Assembly: GCA_965644265.1 (NCBI GenBank)
Contig: OZ286461.1
Coordinates: 97,030,001 to 97,094,000, forward strand
Source of the DNA: Glycera tridactyla
Lineage: Eukaryota
Reading direction: 5' to 3'
DNA: 64,000 nucleotides
Below are positions 15,585-41,100 of this stretch, piece after piece (position 1 is the first letter of the stretch; every line of letters starts with the position of its first letter). The position numbers and the translations under genes are program-made. Below the pieces are notes generated by a model. It was not told the origin of the DNA. It made no database searches and saw only the letters and a program-made list of their open reading frames with translations.

Positions 15585-15750
15585 GGTAGGATGTGGGTTC
15601 AGGGTCTCTGCAGATAAATTTTTGCCTTCTGTTAGTGACCCAAAAGGAGGAGTTTTGAATGATCCCACCCATGCCCATTGCATGGGCGTCACAATATAGC
15701 ACAGATGGAGCTGATGGGACGTTAAACCCCCGACAAAACAAGCAAAAAAA
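15585..15750 (+). mobile_element. SINE 3' two-thirds preceded by a sequence resembling the 5' leader of the long retroposon
   Basis: GGTAGGATGTGGGTTCAGGGTCTCT is followed by the SINE body and tail. A separate SINE 5' fragment lies at ~15260-15345. Confidence 0.7.
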
Positions 15751-16224
15751 CTGGAGCAGAATTCCATTTTCATGTTAGCACATGGGACGAATGCAGACTG
15801 TAGGGAAACAAAAACTATTTACATGGCAGGGACATGCGGAGAGAATAACACAACGTGCCAAATGTCCCACTCAAGGGAAAAACAGTGGGACATTTCAGAA
15901 AAGAGTGGGACACACTCACAGAACATCAGAAATCAGGCTGAATAGGGAGTTTTTCACCCCTCACCATTATGGAATCAAGAAATAAAGCAGTAATTGAAAA
16001 AAACACAAAGTTATTTTGTTTATGCTTTCTTTATCATCAAAAAATAAATCTACAATACAAATGCATTGTTTTGCGTATCATCAGCATTGAGAACACAGAA
16101 CATAAAGTATAGCGCAGTATTTGAGATGTGCGATATTACATGACAAGATACAATGCATAAAGTTATCCCTATTTGTCAAGACAGTTGAAGACACAGGGTA
16201 TTGCTGGCTGGAAGCTGACAGGTG

Positions 16225-16457
16225 TGGACTAGAAAAAGATAACTATTTGTCAGCATTTCAGTTGCTCAGGTCTGGACTAGAAAAAGATAACTATTTGCCA
16301 GCATTTCAGTTGCTCGGGTCTGGACTAGAAAAAGATAACTATTTGCCAGCATTTCAGTTGCTCGGGTCTGGACTAGAAACATTTGAAACATTTGATTTTG
16401 ATGGAGTCTGGACTAGAAAATGATAAATACATGTATTTGTCAGCATTTCAGTTGCTC
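16225..16457. repeat. 48-bp tandem repeat (x3 plus a variant) in the hAT 3' region
   Basis: TGGACTAGAAAA starts at 16225, 16273, 16321, 16369 and 16409; the unit includes the transposase stop-codon region. Confidence 0.9.
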
Positions 16458-17959
16458 TTAGAAAAGATCTTGCGGGCTGATGCATTTCGCCAGCACTTGA
16501 GGGCTCCATCAAAATCAAATGTTTCAAACTGCCCTCCCTCAATTTGGACACGCATAAGCTGATCACAGTGTGCAGAAGACAATCTGTTCCGCATAGCGGT
16601 AGTAGTCTGGTTCTGCACACTGAAAGTGCGCTCGCAATCGGAAGTGTGCACTGGGTGAGTGAGTGCAAGACACACAATGTACCGCAGATTGGGAAATGAA
16701 TCCCCATGGTGAGTGGCCAAGAGTTCCCACAGAGCTGACATTGAATCAGTCGCAACTGATTCATACCTGAGGGTCTTGACCAAAGACTTGCACATGTGCC
16801 ACTCACCCATGATATCTGAGACACTTGCTGCAGGAATGAATGGTGGAGACTTGAAAGTCTCATTTTGAAATTCATGAGTTTGCTCATTTGTGTAAAACAA
16901 TGCCAAATCCCGTACCTCCTCATCACCCCACTCAAGGAGGGCAGTTTCACTCATGAAAGTGATGCCTCTCAGACCCAGCATACCAAATTTGGTCATGCTG
17001 TCTGTATCGGGAAACCTAGCATGCAGTCCATCAAGCATGGCCTGCAAGAAATCACGGCGGCAAATGTGAGAGTGGGCAGCATAGGCCTTTGATACTTTAT
17101 GATGGCCTTTGAAGACACCGCCAACCAGATCACTGCTCAAAGCATCAGCATGCATGGGCTTGCCGAGTGGGTTTTGTTCATCACGGAGCTGTTCAAGCGC
17201 CTTGATGCAAGCCTGAACATTTATTCTCACCAAACTAATGTCAACGTCTTTCTTCTGAAAAAAGAGGTTCAGTTTCATGATTGGTTCTAGCCAATCTAGC
17301 ATCGAGTATGCTGTACGGATGAATAATTCCTGGCCTATCTTTCTATTCAAACCAACGGCTCTAGGGCAGTTCTTAGTAGCCAAGTAAGTCATCAGACTAT
17401 CAAGGGTTCTAACTACCGATTCAAGTGCTGTGTAAAAAGATAACCAGCGAACCTGGTGCACTTCCCTATACTTTAAATGAGGTTCATTTAATATGTTTTG
17501 CACAGACTGCAGCCCCGCCACTTTCGTTGGGCTCATCTTGAAATAGTAATAGATTGATGTGATAACATCTTTAAAATCCCTGATGGATTTTACTTTATCT
17601 GCAGCATGCTCAGATATGAGGGCTGTGCGGTGAGCACTGCAGTGCGTACCTGAAACATGTGGATTGGCCCGCAAGAACTGCCCAAGTAGACCATTTTTCT
17701 TGCCAGTCATGACGGCTGCACCGTCAGTCCCTAGCCCATACACTTTTGACAGGGAAATGTTCCGTTTTTCTAGCTCAAATTTGATGGCATTGAAAATGCC
17801 CGAACCTGTAGCATCACCAATATATACATCAGTTAAAAAATGTGTCGAGGGATGCAATGTGATAGGGTTCACCACTCTTATATTGATCGCAAGCTTGTGA
17901 TTTACTACAATGTCCGTGCTCTCATCTGTCAACACTGTTATTGTTGGGGAAGAAGACAT

Positions 17960-20932
17960 ATGTATGACAGTCTATGTAAGGAAAAATTATCCAGTGTGGA
18001 CATTTTGAGTGCAGATGATCCCATTCAAAACTTCACAGAGATAATGCATGGTGTAGCGTTACAAACTATCCCCAAGACCTCTCCTTATCAAGGACAGGCT
18101 TCCAAACCATGGTTTAACGATGATTGCAGAGAAGCTATTGATGAAAGGAAACAAGCACTGAAAGACTTCTCCAGAAGACCTGCTGCGGACTTATTGACTG
18201 AGTACAAAGTACTGAAGGCGAGGTCTCGTAGGACATGTCGCAGCAGTAAGCGTCACTGTTGGAGGGAGTTTGTATCAGGACTTAATTCAAACACACCCAT
18301 CAATAAGGCTTGGAACATGATTCAACGAATCCGTGGAAAGGGTAGAGGCCCACGAATCCACCATCTAAAAAAAGATGATCATCTGATCACGCAACCTCAG
18401 GATATTTCGGAATCACTAGCATCACAATTTGCACAAAATTCATCTTCTGAAAATCACTCAGAGGAATTTCAAAATTATAAAGAAAAGGCTGAAGGAAAAC
18501 AACTTGATCTAACATCTGATAATACAGAAGAATATAATCAGCTTTTTTCGATGACTGAACTAGAAACTGCATTGAATGCATCCCATGATACCTCCCCAGG
18601 GCAAGATGAAGTCCATTATCAAATGCTGAGACATCTGCCAGCCTGCTCTTTGCAACTGATGCTCGATATCTTTAACCAAATTTGGGAGACTGGATGCTTT
18701 CCCACTTCATGGGCAGAAGCCATCGTCATCCCCATAGCAAAGCCAGGTAAGGATCCATTTGATCCTGTAAATTACAGACCAATAGCACTCACAAGCTGTG
18801 TCTGTAAGACCATGGAAAGAATGATAAATAAGAGGTTGGTTTGGTACTTGGAGTCGAATGACTTGCTAACACCATATCAGAGTGGTTTCCGGAAGGGCAG
18901 AAATACACTGGACAACCTGATAAGGTTTGAGACATTTATTCGTGAGGCCTTTGTTCAGAAGCAGCACTTAGTTGCAGTTTTCTTTGACATGGAGAAGGCT
19001 TATGACACCACCTGGAGATATGGAATTATGAAAGATCTACTCAAAATGAACCTTAGAGGCAGAATGCCTATTTTCATAGAGAAATTTTTGAGGGATCGGT
19101 CTTTCCGTGTCCGAGTTGGATCTACCTTCTCAGATAATTTCGACCAGGAAATGGGGGTCCCACAAGGAAGCATTTTATCAGTTACCCTTTTCAGCATTAA
19201 AATGAATAGTATTGTTGAATGCCTCTCCCAGGACACCAATTGCTCCTTATATGTAGATGACTTTCTTATCTGCTATGGAGCTAGACAAGTTCGGGTAGTG
19301 GAGAGGAAACTACAGCAAACCCTATACAAACTTCAAGACTGGGCGGACAAGAATGGCTTCAAATTTTCTAAAACCAAAACAGTTTGCATGCATTTCTGTA
19401 GATCAACAAGGCATCATGATGAACCAGAGCTCTTTCTGGGTGGATCAGCAATACCAGTAGTGGAACAAACAAAGTTTCTAGGCCTGGTCTTTGACCGACG
19501 ATTGACTTTCAAACCCCATATTCAGCAACTCAAAGTCAAATGCCTGCGGGCACTTGACATGCTGAAAGTGCTATCCCACCTGGACTGGGGAGCTGACCGG
19601 GAGACCCTGCTCATGGTTTACAGATCTCTTATTCGATCTAAATTGGATTATGGGTGCATGATTTACGGCTCTGCATGCCCAACCAACCTCAAAATGCTTG
19701 ATACAGTCCATAACCAAGCTTTACGCATATGCCTCCGAGCTTTTCGGACATCACCTACTGAAAGCCTCCATGTGGAAGCCAATGAACCTTCACTTCATCT
19801 ACGAAGGATAAAGTTAGGTCTCCAGTATTGTCTGAAATTGAAAGCAAACCCATCGAATCCAACACATGAGAGTGTCTTCAGGCCTAAATATAAACAGGAA
19901 TTTCAAGAAAATCTCAACGTCATTGCTCCTCTTGGAATAAGATTCGAAAATCACTTTGGAAGTTGTGACTTTGACACACTCCCAATATCACAGATGGATC
20001 CTGCTCAGATTGCGGACTGGAACTGTGACATTCCACAAATACATCTAGACTTGACTCAGTCCACAAAGGAGAACACCAACCCATCGCTATACAAAAGTAG
20101 ATACCTAGAGATTAGGTCACGTTATAGTGATCATGAGGCCATCTTCACGGATGGATCCAAATGTGACAGCAAAGCATCTGCAGCTGTTTATACAGAATCA
20201 CAAACTTATTACTGCAGATTACCTGATTGGTCAACAGTGTTCTCAGCTGAACTGAGGGCCTTACTAATGGCTTTCAAATACTTATCAAGGTCGGAAAAAC
20301 AAAAGTTCATAATTTTCACAGACTCCCTGTCATCTCTGCAGGCCTTGCAGGGAAATCTCAGGAACTGTATACTCTTGCAAATCTTGCAAGAGTATCAAAA
20401 AATCAAAGATCATCAAAAGACTGTTAGACTTTGCTGGATTCCGAGCCATATCGGAATTCCTGGAAATGAGGCAGCCGATAAAGCGGCCAAAAGGGCTCTA
20501 GGCTTGCCAGTCACTGAAATGGAAATCCATTATTCTGACTTCAAGCCAAGAATAAAGCTCTATATTGACCAACTCTGGCAGAATGAATGGGGAACCAAAA
20601 AGCGAAATAAATTGTATCGCATCAGACCAAAACTTGAGGACAGATTCCCTGTGAGAACTATGAATAGAAGAGAGGAGATAGTACTTTCCCGTCTGAGGAT
20701 AGGACATACATATCTCACCCATTCACACCTTCTGAAAAAACAAGGCAATCCTAATTGCTTTGCATGCGGATGCCGTCTCACAGTTAAACATTTGTTGCTC
20801 GACTGTAGAAAACTATCGCAAACTAGAGTGAAATATTACAATGTTGAAAATATGACGCAACTTTTCATGAAAATCGACCCAACAGACATATTTGATTATT
20901 TGCATGAATTGGGAATATTTAGACAGATATGA
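17960..20932 (+). CDS. LINE ORF2 fragment (RT + RNase H + zinc knuckle, no endonuclease). The first ~40 aa of the 17840-20932 ORF are antisense hAT sequence.
   Basis: Similarity to the second LINE copy begins only at ~17960 (compare 38823). Confidence 0.85.
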   Translation: MYDSLCKEKLSSVDILSADDPIQNFTEIMHGVALQTIPKTSPYQGQASKPWFNDDCREAIDERKQALKDFSRRPAADLLTEYKVLKARSRRTCRSSKRHCWREFVSGLNSNTPINKAWNMIQRIRGKGRGPRIHHLKKDDHLITQPQDISESLASQFAQNSSSENHSEEFQNYKEKAEGKQLDLTSDNTEEYNQLFSMTELETALNASHDTSPGQDEVHYQMLRHLPACSLQLMLDIFNQIWETGCFPTSWAEAIVIPIAKPGKDPFDPVNYRPIALTSCVCKTMERMINKRLVWYLESNDLLTPYQSGFRKGRNTLDNLIRFETFIREAFVQKQHLVAVFFDMEKAYDTTWRYGIMKDLLKMNLRGRMPIFIEKFLRDRSFRVRVGSTFSDNFDQEMGVPQGSILSVTLFSIKMNSIVECLSQDTNCSLYVDDFLICYGARQVRVVERKLQQTLYKLQDWADKNGFKFSKTKTVCMHFCRSTRHHDEPELFLGGSAIPVVEQTKFLGLVFDRRLTFKPHIQQLKVKCLRALDMLKVLSHLDWGADRETLLMVYRSLIRSKLDYGCMIYGSACPTNLKMLDTVHNQALRICLRAFRTSPTESLHVEANEPSLHLRRIKLGLQYCLKLKANPSNPTHESVFRPKYKQEFQENLNVIAPLGIRFENHFGSCDFDTLPISQMDPAQIADWNCDIPQIHLDLTQSTKENTNPSLYKSRYLEIRSRYSDHEAIFTDGSKCDSKASAAVYTESQTYYCRLPDWSTVFSAELRALLMAFKYLSRSEKQKFIIFTDSLSSLQALQGNLRNCILLQILQEYQKIKDHQKTVRLCWIPSHIGIPGNEAADKAAKRALGLPVTEMEIHYSDFKPRIKLYIDQLWQNEWGTKKRNKLYRIRPKLEDRFPVRTMNRREEIVLSRLRIGHTYLTHSHLLKKQGNPNCFACGCRLTVKHLLLDCRKLSQTRVKYYNVENMTQLFMKIDPTDIFDYLHELGIFRQI

Positions 20933-21174
20933 ATCGTGTGCATGCTAACCCAGTGCATGCCGACTGGGATATCAAAGGCCGGCCGTGCTGATAGGAGTCT
21001 TTTCCTTGACGCACGTTAAAGATCCACTGCTGTCTTTCGCAAAGAGTAGGGACGGCCCCCGGCAGGCAGTGACTCTTTTCTTCAGCATTTTCAGTTTTTT
21101 TTGTTTTTTTTCAGTCCGATATAACCCAAGTGGGTTTAAGTGACGTTAAACTTAAACAAACAACAAACAAACAA
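17960..21174 (+). mobile_element. 5'-truncated RNase-H-containing LINE (I group, Nimb/I-like), young copy
   Basis: Uninterrupted ORF to 20932 with RT (GVPQGSILS, LYVDDF), RNase H (IFTDGSK, AELRAL, FTDSLS, WIPSHIGIPGNEAADKAAK) and a C-terminal CFAC...H...C knuckle. The 3' UTR ends TGACGTTAAAC-(AAAC)n. ACAT is duplicated at 17956-17959 and 21175-21178. The APE domain is missing. Confidence 0.95.
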
Positions 21175-24100
21175 ACATCTTGGAGGTAATCTGATGATCA
21201 ATAACAGATGACAGAGCCTCTAAAAGGCCATTTCCTGACCTTACACTGGTGTAATCCACGGTACTGGTACATTTCAAATGTTCAACATCAGGAACATTCA
21301 AGTGCTGCGAGAATTTGATGAGCGAAGAATATTTTTCAAGAGGCAATGATTCCTGACATAGCCAAAAGACCGCTTTCATCGCAATTAACACACCCTGCTC
21401 TTCCTTCGTCCGAGCCTGCCCGAGTGCAGCATCCATATTCTTCTTTTCTGTGGGTGCACACACTATGCGTCTGTGGTCTTCTGTGGCAAGGTGCCTTGTT
21501 AGTGTTGAGGTACGAAAATTATTCATACCAAGTGCAAGAGTGTTCTTGAGCCCTCCCTCTCTACATAATTCACAGAACATGAGATTATTCTTCGAGTCAA
21601 ACTTTAACCAAGGGTACGCTTGCATCCACGCCTTCCTGAAGTTGCGAGTGACAGTCTGGTCCGACGATGAAGATGAAGTTGGCTCCCCGGATGGCTCGCT
21701 CTGTTGTTTATTCGCCTGCTGCTGATCACCACTCTCATCACCCTGCGGCTCGACACTCTCAACCTCTGCCTGCTTGCCACTCAGAGGCTGATCGGGCTGT
21801 GCTCCACTCTCTGGGCCTTTTTCTGCATCCTAAAAAACAAAAATCTAAATTAATGATCTGGTAACTAATTTTTTTTAGGTACAATCTTGCCAATTAATGA
21901 CCTGGTAACTATTTTTTTTTCAGATACAATCTTGCCCTATCTGTGTGATTGGGGAAAATAGTATATTTAATCATGCTGCTTTGTGCAGTTCCCCAGGCAA
22001 ACAAAATCCCTACTACAGTAACTCATTCACCATTAAAAAATGACACAAATAACAAAATCATCCCTGCTACAGTAACTCAATCACCATAAAAATGACACCA
22101 ATGTCTCCACAGGACACCCATTATATATTGGACAAACATGTGGCACCCCAAAGGCATGCCACCCCAAAGGCTGTATCAGCCCTCAACAAATTTCACAACC
22201 CAAATCAGAGGGGGGGGGGGTGAGCACATGGCACTGGCCCACATGTCATGGCACTTGCCAGAAAAGTTTCTCAAACTCCAACAAACACCTGACAGATTCC
22301 CATGATACCAGTTGTTTGCACCCAAAAACAACACCTACCATCACTCTAAAGTGGCTTCTTATGTCCATTTTCCGCCGTTTCCCGCTTGACATTTTGCTGA
22401 ATATAATAATATTGTTGAGAAACGCAAGTGAAACCCAGAATCGGTCCGAAATCTCGCATGAATTCACGCCTGGCGCGAGAGTTGGCGCAAGACTTCACCT
22501 CATTTGCATATCATTTAGATACGTAATTTATGCGAGTCACGTTTGAATTCACGCAGGCTCGAGATCGATTTTTCAAGATGGCGCCCGATTGTTTTGGTCA
22601 ACGAATAACCGGTAAAATATACAATTTCGTTCGTCAGACGAATAATTCCGACATCGATAAAGCTTTTATCCATTCGTGGCGATTTCAGTGCGACAAATGA
22701 GAAAGTTACGCGACTATGGCACGTGGCGCTGGCCTCTGCATGTCCCTGCATGGTTTCCAATACCTGCCAAACCCATGTCCTGCCTCTTTCATAATCTTGC
22801 ATCCAAAGTTAGAGTACGACATGGAACATTTGAGACCCCTGAGGCCAACTCATGGATCAGGATGTTCACTTCATACTTCCCAGCTAAAGAACTGTCCTCT
22901 TCTCAGGTCCTGGGCCCCTGAGCCATGGGCTAAATTTGAATAGATTGTAAATGCCTGTATATAAGGGTGCTGCAAGTACTGTCTTGAGAACAAACATCCT
23001 GAGGCCAACCCATGACTTGTTATCCAGAGACTCAACTGTGGCATAAGATTAGATGGTGACTTCATTTATAAATGCAAACTGGACAAGATCATTCCTTGCC
23101 ACTCAGTGGGCACAGGGAAATGGCCCGGCAATGAAGAAACTTGCTCCGAGGAAAAACAGCAACAGACGGATGAGGATGTAGAAGCGGTGGTGGGTTGACA
23201 GATGATGTTGACTGGTCATCTGTCGGCAGTGTAAAGGAAAGACGTGGAGGCAGTGCAATGCCTTGTGGGCTCCGAACTGTGTTTCCTCTACTCCAATTGG
23301 TCACCCATCATTCAGGGTATGATTGATACCCCTGTGCTATGGAACCTGACCTTCATTCACACAACCGAAATCATATTACTTTTGGTAATATGTATTTTTC
23401 GGTTACATGAAAAAACAGACAAGATCATGTCTGGCTATAACATTTTATTGGAAATGTTTTATGTACCCTGGATGCCTCTTGTCATCTAGAGCTGAATCCC
23501 ATTTTCATGTCAGCACATGGGACCAATCCATGAAATGTATGGAAACAAAAAACCTATATGCATGGTTGACGATGCCTGCTTAAAAAGCTATCAACATTAC
23601 ATCAAATACGAGTGAAAAGATAAGCAGGGCCTGGGACAAACCGATGTCCTGCCTCTCACACGAAACATTTGAGACGCCTGCGGTCAACCCATGGATCAGA
23701 TTGTCACTTTGTACTTCCCAGGTACAGAACTGTTCTCTCTATACATTATGGGCCCCTGAGGCAAACTCATGGGCTGGATTTGAAGAGATTGTTGTGCAAT
23801 TGCCTGTATATAAAGTTGCTGCAAGTTATGTTTTGAGAACAAAAATCCTGAGGCCAAGTCATGATTTGTTATCCAGACAGCAGTTGAGATGGTGACTGTA
23901 TTATTAAATGTAAACAGGACGATCATTCCTTGCTACTCTCAGGTGGCATGGGGGAACAGCCTGGTCAGTGGACATCATGGGACCACTGAAGTGCCAACTG
24001 AGAAAAAACAAAAGAGAACATGGTACATTACAGGACCAAAATAGTATCAGGGCGGATGTTTGAACGAAAAGCCCCATGTCTCCAATGTCCTAACGCAATA

Positions 24101-38146: not shown

Positions 38147-41100
38147 TGTCGTGGTTTTAGAGCAAATAAGCATGAATTAGATTTATTAGTAGCTAAATAT
38201 TGCCCAGCAGTGATATGTCTCCAGGAAACCTTCATGCAAAAAGATATCGAACTCCGTGGATATGTTACCTATGATATAAAAGCCACCATTGATCATGCCA
38301 ACCGACCGCATGGAGGTGTGGCTCTGCTTGTCAGGCAAAACATCCCGCAATCACAGATTCCACTGACTACAACTTTGAAGGCAGTGGCTACTAGAATCAC
38401 ATTGGATAGAACAATCTCAATTTGTTCAGTATATCTTCCCCCTAGTGAAACTAAGACTGTGGGTAAACTCAATAGACTTCATGATCAACTACCAGCCTCA
38501 GCCATAATGCTGGGGATTTTAATGCACATAATGCTATATGGGGAGGAATTAATTCTGACTCTAGGGGTGATAGGGTTGAAGAATTTATCAACCATAAAAA
38601 CCTAAGTATTTGGAATGATGGTGCCCCCACCTATTTTCATCCGGGGAGTGGATCTTTCACTTCTATTGACCTCTCCATTTGCCATTCATCTCTTCTGCTA
38701 GTCTTTACCTGGCAGACAGAAACTGATCCACATGGCAGTGACCATTTCCCTATCATACTGAGTAATGACAACAAGATCCCTGACAGGCTACCAACATGGA
38801 ATCTCACAAAAGCAAACTGGACTATGTATGACAGTCTCTGTAAGGAAAAATTATCCAGTGTGGACATTTTGAGTGCAGATGATCCCATTCAAAACTTCAG
38901 AGATAATGCAAGGTGTAGCATTACAAGCTATTCCCAAGACCTCTCCTTATCAAGGACAGGCTTCCAAACCATGGTTCAACGATGATTGCAGAGAAGCTAT
39001 TGATGAAAGGAAACAAGCCCTGAAAGACTTCTCCAGAAGACTTGCTGTGGACTTATTGACTGAGTACAAAGTACTGAAGGCAAGGTCACGTAGGACATGT
39101 CGCAGCAGTAAGCGCTACTGTTGGAGGGGGTTTGTATCAGGACTTAATTCAAACACCCATCAATAAGGCTTGGAACATGATTCAACGAATCCGTGGAAAG
39201 GGTAGAGGCCCATGAATCCACCATCTAAAAAAAAGATGATCATCTGATCACACAACCTCAGGATATTTCGGAATCACTGGCATCACAGTTTGCACAAAAT
39301 TCATCTTCTGAAAATCACTCAGAGGAATTTCAAAATTATAAAGAAAAGGCTGAAGGAAAACAACTTGATTTAACATCTGATAATACAGAAGAATATAATC
39401 AGCTCTTTTCGATGAGTGAACTAGAAACTGCATTGAATGCATCCCATGATACCTCCCCAGGGCAAGATGACGTCCATTATCAAATGCTGAGACATCTGCC
39501 AGCCTGCTCTTTGCAACTGATGCTTGATATATTTAACCAAATTTGGGAGACTGGATGCTTTCCCACTTCATGGGCAGAAGCCATCGTCATCCCCATAGCA
39601 AAGCCAGGTAAGGATCCATTCGATCCTGTAAATTACAGACCAATAGCACTCACAAGCTGTTTCTGTAAGACCATGGAAAGAATGATGAGTGAGAGGTTGG
39701 TTTGGTACTTGGAGTCGAATGACTTGCTAACACCATATCAGAGTGGTTTCCAGAAGGGCAGAAATACACTTGACAACCTGATAAGGTTTGAGACATTTGT
39801 TCGTGAGGCCTTTGTTCAGAAGCAGCACTTAGTTGCAGTTTTCTTTGACATGGAGAAGGCCTATCACACCACCTGGAAATATGGAATTATGAAAGATCTA
39901 TTCAAAATGAACCTTAGAGTCAGAATGCCCATTTTCATAGAGAAATTTTTGAGGGATCGGTCTTTCCGTGTCCGAGTTGGATCAACCTTCTCAGATAATT
40001 TCGACCAGGAAATAGGGTTCCCACAAGATAGCATTTTATCAGTTACCCTTTTCAGCATTAAAATGAATAGTATCGTTGAATGTCTCTCCCAGGACACCAA
40101 TTGCTCTTTATATGTAGATGACTTTCTTATCTGCTATGGAGCTAGACAAGTTCGGGTAGTAAGGGGAAACTACAGCAAACCCTATACAAACTTCAAGACT
40201 GGGCGGACAGGAATGGCTTTAAATTTTCTGAAACCAAAACAGTTTGCATGCATTTCTGTAGATCGACAAGGCATCACGATGAACCTGAGCTCTTCCTGGG
40301 TGGATCAGCAATACCAGTAGTGGAACAAACAAAGTTTCTAGGACTGGTCTTTGACCGACGATTGACTTTCAAACCCCATATTCAGCAACTCAAAGTCAAA
40401 TGTCTCCGGGCACTTGACATGCTGAAGGTGCTATCTCACCGGGACTGGGGAGCTGACCGGGAGACCCTGCTTGTGGTTTACAGATCTCTTATTCGATCTA
40501 AATTAGATTATGGTTGCATGATTTATGGCTCTGCATGCCCAACCAACCTCAAAATGCTTGATACAGTCCATAACCAAGCTTTACGCATATGCCTCCAAGC
40601 TTTTCGGACATCACCTACTGAAAGCCTCCATGTGGAAGCCAATGAACCTTCACTTCATCTACGAAGGATAAAGTTGGGTCTCCAGTACTGTCTGAAATTG
40701 AAAGCGAACTCATCAAATCCAACACATGAGAGTGTCTTCAGGCCTAAATATAAACAGGAATTTCAAGAAAATCTCAACATCATTGCTCCTCTTGAAATAA
40801 GATTCGAAAATCACTTTGGAAGTTTTGACTTTGACACACTCCCAATATCACAGATGGATCCTGCGCAGATTGCGGACTGGGACTGTGACATTCCACAAAC
40901 ACATCTGGACTTGACTCAGTCCACAAAGGAGAACACCCATCGCCCTGTCTGAAATGGCACCTTGTGTGTCTGTGATTTTCATATCATTTCACCTTCCGTT
41001 TGGGACCCAGAAGGAGGAGTCTTGGAAGATCCCACCCATGCCCATTGCATGGGCGTCACAATATAGCCCAAACGGTGCTGACGTGACGTTAAATCAGAAC

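Follow-up and report, generated by a model that had tools for sequence, protein, structure and literature searches.

A LINE-interrupted hAT transposon of Glycera tridactyla and the 5-, 6- and 7-bp target site duplications of its family

hAT transposons have short terminal inverted repeats (TIRs) starting with CAG or TAG, and their target site duplication (TSD) usually measures 8 bp. For cut-and-paste elements, TSD length is usually taken as a fixed signature that is set by the geometry of the two active sites. The literature accepts exceptions to the 8-bp rule for hATs (PMC12730594). Families with 5- and 6-bp TSDs have been named hAT5 and hAT6 (Kapitonov and Jurka 2007, Repbase Reports 7:1188 and 7:1192, in the form cited by PMC12730594), and both groups have been placed in an animal lineage that includes Blackjack, with a fungal hAT7 added (PMC12730594). 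Here, we analysed a 64,000-nucleotide stretch of Glycera tridactyla DNA (C7:97030001-97094000, hereafter the window), which contains a hAT transposon at positions 15827-22748 on the minus strand, or 15822-22753 with its TSDs. The region is very probably one copy of a low-copy, young, autonomous hAT family that belongs to the lineage of the mollusc proteins named C17orf113-like or ZNF862-like.

Like hAT5 and hAT6, the window family is an autonomous animal hAT in which TSDs of 5 or 6 bp occur, the TIRs are short and of CAG type, and the DDE transposase includes a hAT dimerisation domain. Compared by description and not by reference sequence, those groups have one TSD length each, whereas the window family has 5, 6 and 7 bp. 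The hAT5 trait (a 5-bp TSD) is seen in five of its nine copies and the hAT6 trait (a 6-bp TSD) in three. The family itself is a new example of a known rare hAT variant. An earlier sequence-only reading of this DNA had called hATs with 5-bp TSDs a little-studied group; hAT5 and hAT6 were already named in 2007 according to the citation in PMC12730594.

The genome searched comprises 2.04 Gb in 207 contigs, and the DNA searches used each half of the element and each 120-bp terminus. Exactly nine copies with both ends were found, on seven contigs. All nine end in CAGGG...CCCTG, have unrelated flanks, and carry a TSD of their own. They are as follows.

Window copy, C7:97.05 Mb, 6922 bp: full length, split by a long interspersed nuclear element (LINE); TSD 5 bp
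L027, C42:14848260-14851889, 3630 bp: full length, uninterrupted; TSD 6 bp
L028, C47:14477735-14481353, 3619 bp: full length, uninterrupted; TSD 6 bp
L029, C11, 5006 bp: full length, with a 1.28-kb insertion and a 6-bp deletion; TSD 6 bp
L030, C1, 1163 bp: internal-deletion derivative; TSD 5 bp
L031, C7:56.75 Mb, 1192 bp: derivative with an inverted 159-nt fragment of exon 2; TSD 5 bp, one mismatch
L032, C13, 794 bp: derivative; TSD 5 bp
L033, C7:105.65 Mb, 2943 bp: derivative with a nested 1.67-kb TIR element; TSD 5 bp
L034, C34, 881 bp: derivative; TSD 7 bp

Among the other hAT families of the genome, the partial relative L011 shows one terminus only. The search for uninterrupted copies that the sequence-only reading had proposed thus yielded two LINE-free, full-length elements, on C42 and C47. 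That reading had also presented the window copy as a resurrectable transposon. Its reconstruction of the element was correct, and resurrection is unnecessary because natural intact copies exist.

TSD length varies within the family. It is 5 bp in five copies (one of them mismatched), 6 bp in three and 7 bp in one, and an 8-bp TSD was found in none of the nine. Read in transposase sense, the 5-bp duplications are CCATG, CAAGG, GATGT, CATCA and GGTAT/GGTAA (the mismatched pair), the 6-bp duplications are CTTCAC, CTCATG and GTTCTT, and the 7-bp duplication is CATAATG. Chance would produce an exact 5-bp pair about once in 1,000, far too seldom to account for the four observed. For the empty-site test, copies were searched together with their flanks for places where the matches to the left and right flanks overlap by the TSD length. 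The copies on C34 and C42 lie inside other repeats, so their 7- and 6-bp TSDs are provable. The C34 derivative has more than 10 paralogous empty sites at which the flank matches overlap by exactly 7 bp, including C42:20445975-20445981, C74:44421-44427 and C7:92107723-92107729. Five paralogous empty sites with an overlap of exactly 6 bp were found for L027 on C42, namely C4:117389203-117389208, C51:8074096-8074101, and others on C13, C32 and C10. These sites prove both the element ends and the TSD length in the 6- and 7-bp cases. The 5-bp TSD ascribed to the element in the sequence-only reading therefore applies to the window copy and four others; it is not a fixed trait, as the family stagger ranges from 5 to 7 bp.

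The window copy is 6922 bp long with the LINE and about 3.6 kb without it, and there is no N within the element region. Its parts, in window positions, are the following.

15822-15826, no strand: TSD on the 3' side of the element, CATGG on the plus strand
15827-15841, minus strand: 3' TIR, CAGGGACATGCGGAG read inward; the same terminus in all nine genomic copies, with unrelated flanks
15863-15912, no strand: subterminal motifs, three GTGGGACA, with GGGACA in common with the TIR
16219-16379, no strand: 48-bp tandem repeat, 3.4 units, in the 3' untranslated part
16382-16406 and 16504-16528, minus strand: perfect 25-nt inverted repeat that encloses the stop codon
16448-17959, minus strand: distal part of exon 2, 503 codons and stop, with both catalytic D residues, CxxH, RW, the catalytic E and the hAT dimerisation domain
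17960-21178, plus strand: 5'-truncated LINE, 3,219 bp including one ACAT, antisense to the transposase
21179-21829, minus strand: proximal part of exon 2, 217 codons, with an acidic, Ser-rich linker and a CCHH zinc finger of the zf-C17orf113 type
22338-21830, minus strand: predicted intron, phase 0, 509 bp, GTAGGT...ttttgttttttAG, GT-AG with a polypyrimidine tract
22392-22339, minus strand: predicted exon 1, 18 codons, MSSGKRRKMDIRSHFRVM, a basic stretch followed by an I-x-x-H-F motif
22393-22733, minus strand: 5' subterminal region, presumed promoter and 5' untranslated region (UTR), CpG-rich
22748-22734, minus strand: 5' TIR, CAGGGACATGCAGAG read inward
22749-22753, no strand: TSD on the 5' side of the element, CATGG on the plus strand

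The TIRs are 15 bp long and start with CAGGGACATGC in all nine copies. In the window copy, the 3' TIR pairs with the reverse complement of the 5' TIR at 14 of 15 bases. Since the single mismatch recurs in each of the nine copies, it is a trait of the family and does not reflect decay. When the last n bases of one flank were compared with the first n bases of the other for n = 2-10, a match was obtained at n = 5 only. Both the intact TIRs and the 5-bp TSD that had been proposed for this copy are thus present, with CATGG on either side. Three of the window's five GTGGGACA matches fall inside the 50 bp at 15863-15912, and the same three are found in L027. The 25-nt inverted repeat would pair the last codons of the transposase mRNA (FETFDFDG) with the 3' UTR. 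This stem has a minimum free energy of -52.3 kcal/mol (z = -4.4) and is conserved in L027, L028 and L029.

The transposase is predicted to be spliced from two exons and to comprise 738 codons (18 + 720). The proximal piece of exon 2 covers 21179-21625 and extends to the acceptor at 21829, and the 68 codons from the first ATG of this exon back to the AG acceptor are free of stops. The uninterrupted exon 2 was read in the natural copies L027 and L028. Both copies have an open exon 1, a GT-AG intron and a 720-codon exon 2 free of stops. The four full-length copies have the same splice donor, splice acceptor and exon 1 peptide, and their introns vary in length (507-518 bp) with the frame kept; of the eight copies that retain exon 1, seven encode the identical peptide. 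Compared by eye, the N-termini of homologues likewise show a K/R-rich stretch followed by h-x-x-[FY]-F, for example MPPKRK...ILKFF in Haliotis, with ...IESFF, ...IGKYF and ...IEKYF in others. These observations agree with the sequence-only reading, which had placed a short first exon across a 509-bp GT-AG intron and obtained a stop-free frame for a 738-residue protein.

The domain content of the protein is that of a hAT transposase. The zf-C17orf113 finger (PF25431) scores 50.8-52.7 bits against a cut-off of 29.5, with 52.7 in the window copy, and for the hAT dimerisation domain (PF05699) the window copy, L027 and L028 reach 28.3-29.0 bits, where the cut-off is 21.4; a match to DUF4371 is weak. 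Catalytic and zinc-binding columns were judged in an alignment of 20 proteins, using exon-2 numbering. Invariant in all 20 are the zinc-finger residues C86, C89, H113 and H119, the catalytic residues D229 (DESTD), D296 (GTDGA) and E660 (CERTFS), and C324/H327 (CSAH) together with R388/W389. Each of the D, D, CxxH, RW and E motifs recognised in the sequence-only reading accordingly falls in an invariant column.

Hermes of Musca domestica (PDB 2BW3, 4D1Q, 6DWW, 8EDG) is by far the best fold match. An AlphaFold2 model built on the 20-protein alignment has a mean predicted local distance difference test score of 84.6, with disorder limited to the first 59 residues. When this model was searched against the PDB with Foldseek, the first 11 listed chains (ranks 1-12) were all Hermes, with E = 8e-11 to 7e-9, a probability of 1.00 and a template modelling score on the target of 0.57-0.71; the next matches (ISCth4, P element, RAG1) had E >= 1e-3. 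HMMER aligns RW (CPTRW of Hermes) and the C-terminal E with Hermes at a marginal E = 0.13. Because the sequence search against structures is marginal, the relationship is settled by the fold search. The two proteins share an N-terminal zinc finger followed by a catalytic core with an alpha-helical insertion domain, and their DDE triads, CxxH, RW and C-terminal regions align. They differ in that identity is 13-16%, the TSD of Hermes is 8 bp, its finger is typed as BED and not zf-C17orf113, and the window protein is about 130 residues longer. In its fold, with an RNase H-like core that an all-alpha domain interrupts, as well as in catalytic residues, dimerisation domain and TIR type, the window element is a hAT.

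At the sequence level, the nearest database proteins are unnamed ENA predictions (57-60% identity). The named relatives come from Pecten maximus, Haliotis rufescens, Pinctada imbricata and Saccostrea cucullata (45-53% identity) and carry the automatic names C17orf113-like or ZNF862-like. They resemble the window protein in length, domain order and an N-terminal basic stretch followed by an FF-like motif, and they represent separate families. In a quick maximum-likelihood tree, the window family and two ENA proteins lie within a strongly supported clade that includes the mollusc proteins, and fish ZNF862 lies outside that clade on a long branch. Vertebrate ZNF862 and C17orf113, which are hAT-derived host genes, share the zf-C17orf113 finger, DUF4371 and the hAT dimerisation region with the window protein. 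They differ from it in that fish ZNF862 is 26% identical and the window gene lies in a multi-copy mobile element with TIRs and TSDs. Among the papers searched, none links C17orf113 with hAT, and those on ZNF862 were uninformative on a transposon origin.

The window copy is split by a LINE whose single plus-strand frame is open for 990 codons and contains RVT_1 (1.2e-35) and RNase_H (7e-13) domains. A domain search of this frame found no endonuclease domain, hence the element is described as 5'-truncated. Its 3' tail is (CAAA)n, and it is flanked by a 4-bp target duplication, ACAT, at 17956-17959 and 21175-21178. At least 40 relatives are 99-100% identical across the full 3.2 kb, among 5,698 first-look candidates; judged from these sequences, the LINE family is very young and abundant and is probably retrotransposing now. 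The LINE is younger than the hAT copies. The codons beside it are AAG (K, 21181-21179) before and ATG (M, 17959-17957) after, so the transposase frame continues as ...ITSK|MSSSPT.... The LINE-free copies L027 and L028 both read ...ITSKMSSSPT... at this site, exactly as the sequence-only reading had obtained by removing 17960-21178.

Whether the LINE is the only damage depends on what is considered. For the reading frame, the claim that the copy is broken only by one LINE stands. For the element as a whole it does not, as three kinds of private change were found. Between 22674 and 22673, at a distance of 75 bp from the 5' end, 25 bp have been lost between short direct repeats; this deletion is unique to the window copy among the nine aligned copies and takes away the sole GGGAC motif of the 5' subterminal region. 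The 48-bp repeat has two more units than in L027. There are also 13 amino-acid replacements relative to both intact copies, and at four of them (T102M, L174S, Q335H and F514S) most homologues side with the intact copies.

The nine copies differ by about 1-2%, and no two are identical. The closest pair, L027 and L028, has 34 mismatches in 3,619 aligned nt (about 0.9%); that the two are separate insertions is shown by their different flanks and TSDs. Against L027, the window copy shows a divergence of about 0.7% in its 3', coding part and of about 2% in its 5', non-coding part. The five internal-deletion derivatives have exact ends and differing flanks, which points to past transposition. The sequence-only reading had proposed recent activity of the family. 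Two other copies are undecayed, and neither general decay of the other copies nor 8-bp TSDs was found, which supports that proposal. L027 and L028 are structurally intact and, judging from their frames, could supply transposase; we infer that the family may be active at present.

Several points weigh against an autonomous, recently mobile family of this kind. In L028, base 4 of the 5' TIR is changed from G to T and five amino-acid replacements are private, one of them at a conserved Phe; only L027 looks wholly unblemished. The ratio of non-synonymous to synonymous differences (pN/pS) is 0.38 for L027 against L028 (14 differences in 2160 coding nt) and 0.7-1.4 against the window copy, values that are not significant with 14-24 coding differences per pair and that would fit neutral decay of the broken window copy. 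No empty site was found for the 5-bp cases in searches with the flanks of the window copy, L032 and L030; the window flanks are unique, between a short interspersed nuclear element (SINE) and a DIRS-like repeat, and those of L032 and L030 are unique at the junction. The GTGGGACA motifs are likely transposase-binding sites as judged from position only. The small number of copies (nine, four of them full length), the lack of any identical pair and the mutated TIR of L028 suit a family that is already extinct, in which the open copies are young relics immobilised by host silencing or subtle defects and the window copy is one more dead insertion. We regard extinction as possible, if rather doubtful. 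Two 720-codon exons would stay open by chance only if very young, every full-length copy has kept its splice sites and exon 1, and in L027 both TIRs are present and none of the three private amino-acid changes falls in a conserved column; multiple intact open reading frames (ORFs) likewise survive in many sister hAT families of this genome. That the locus is a domesticated host gene of the ZNF862/C17orf113 type, or a segmental duplication of one, could be suggested by the names of its closest relatives and by its zf-C17orf113 domain. This explanation was rejected on the TIRs, TSDs, empty sites and deletion derivatives, and we find it scarcely credible: the nine copies share identical TIR ends across seven contigs with unrelated flanks and individual TSDs, paralogous empty sites exist, the derivatives keep the ends only, the full catalytic set is retained, and fish ZNF862 is distant in both identity and tree position.

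For a young, autonomous hAT family, the spread of TSD lengths calls for an explanation of its own. We tentatively propose a single hAT transposase whose integration stagger varies between 5, 6 and 7 bp. The TSD lengths could instead reflect cross-mobilisation by related hAT transposases, some making 5-bp and others 6-bp duplications, especially on the non-autonomous derivatives. The genome contains at least 60 further related hAT ORFs, many of them intact (720-830 codons), multi-copy and 30-47% identical, and TSD length leans with copy type, being 6 bp in three of the four full-length copies and 5 bp in four of the five derivatives. However, the nearest other family has at most 47% protein identity, apart from one broken relative at 68-70%, and cross-recognition of TIRs at such a distance is unusual. 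The split is also not a clean one: the full-length window copy has 5 bp, one derivative has 7 bp, and TSD length does not follow the subfamily division marked by an 11-bp indel. Cross-mobilisation therefore appears unlikely to us.

For the element as a whole, the following course of events may be envisaged. The protein consists of an N-terminal basic motif, a CCHH finger, a Hermes-like DDE core into which an all-alpha domain is inserted, and, at the C-terminus, the hAT dimerisation domain. If it works as Hermes does, the finger would bind the TIRs, which contain GGGACA, as well as the GTGGGACA repeats next to them. Excision by the DDE site, aided by CxxH and RW, would pass through a flanking hairpin, as in Hermes and other hATs. 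On reinsertion, staggered target cuts 5-7 bp apart would be made, and their repair would yield the flanking duplications. Interrupted or faulty gap repair after excision may have given rise to the internal-deletion derivatives and the inverted fragment. The window copy itself inserted with a 5-bp duplication. Later, a LINE of a currently expanding family retrotransposed antisense into exon 2, 5'-truncated and with an ACAT duplication, thereby inactivating the copy, which has also gained the 25-bp subterminal deletion and the 13 private amino-acid changes.

Some of the other copies have features of their own. In L029, the 1.28-kb insertion (L029:2437-3716) splits exon 2 away from the LINE site, and the 6-bp deletion lies just downstream. 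In L031 (C7:56750270-56752461), the inverted 159-nt piece of exon 2 lies between two end segments, an arrangement that, to judge from its layout, is typical of gap-repair errors or a template-switching scar. The nested 1.67-kb element of L033 (L033:1306-2985, in C7:105652600-105656543) has perfect 25-bp TIRs (GGTACTGTCTCTAAAGGTGGTGATC) and a 4-bp ATAT target duplication, and is a different, unclassified DNA transposon. L027 and L028 sit similarly far from the starts of their contigs (14.85 Mb on C42, of 80.9 Mb; 14.48 Mb on C47, of 80.0 Mb), which may be coincidence.

Other repeats surround the element in the window. A SINE-like repeat of about 140 bp (15614-15753) ends about 70 bp left of the hAT and has thousands of copies, with 3,803 first-look candidates at 90-95% identity. 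To the right, 19 bp from the hAT, starts a repeat that runs from 22768-23148 onward and has at least 17 copies at 69-86% identity; at 22768-23148 it matches a DIRS-like element, and the hAT lies just outside it. Another reverse-transcriptase ORF (RVT_1, 1.4e-23) at 39412-40952 marks a further retroelement. Elsewhere in the genome, at C26:49250092-49301334, at least seven ORFs resembling hAT transposases follow one another on one strand, about 5-6 kb apart. These ORFs have 765-777 codons, are mostly open, and are 30-35% identical to the window transposase. From its arrangement, this tandem array, unlike dispersed transposons, may be a domesticated and amplified gene cluster.

What makes this locus interesting is that TSDs of 5, 6 and 7 bp occur among nearly identical members of a single family, with empty sites proving two of the three lengths. 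In other respects it is a nested-transposon insertion of the ordinary sort, and the genome around it is repeat-rich, with many related hAT families. Intact, recently mobile hATs outside insects, fish and plants are potential transposon tools, and such elements help explain genome reshaping. If one transposase does integrate with a variable stagger, TSD length would be only loosely set in this lineage instead of being a constant of each family, and hAT5, hAT6 and hAT7 would in part be names for a single flexible chemistry. The two intact copies would then make this family a direct system for studying what sets target-cut spacing in hAT transpososomes, and a natural enzyme with a loose stagger would make the fixed-TSD rule testable.

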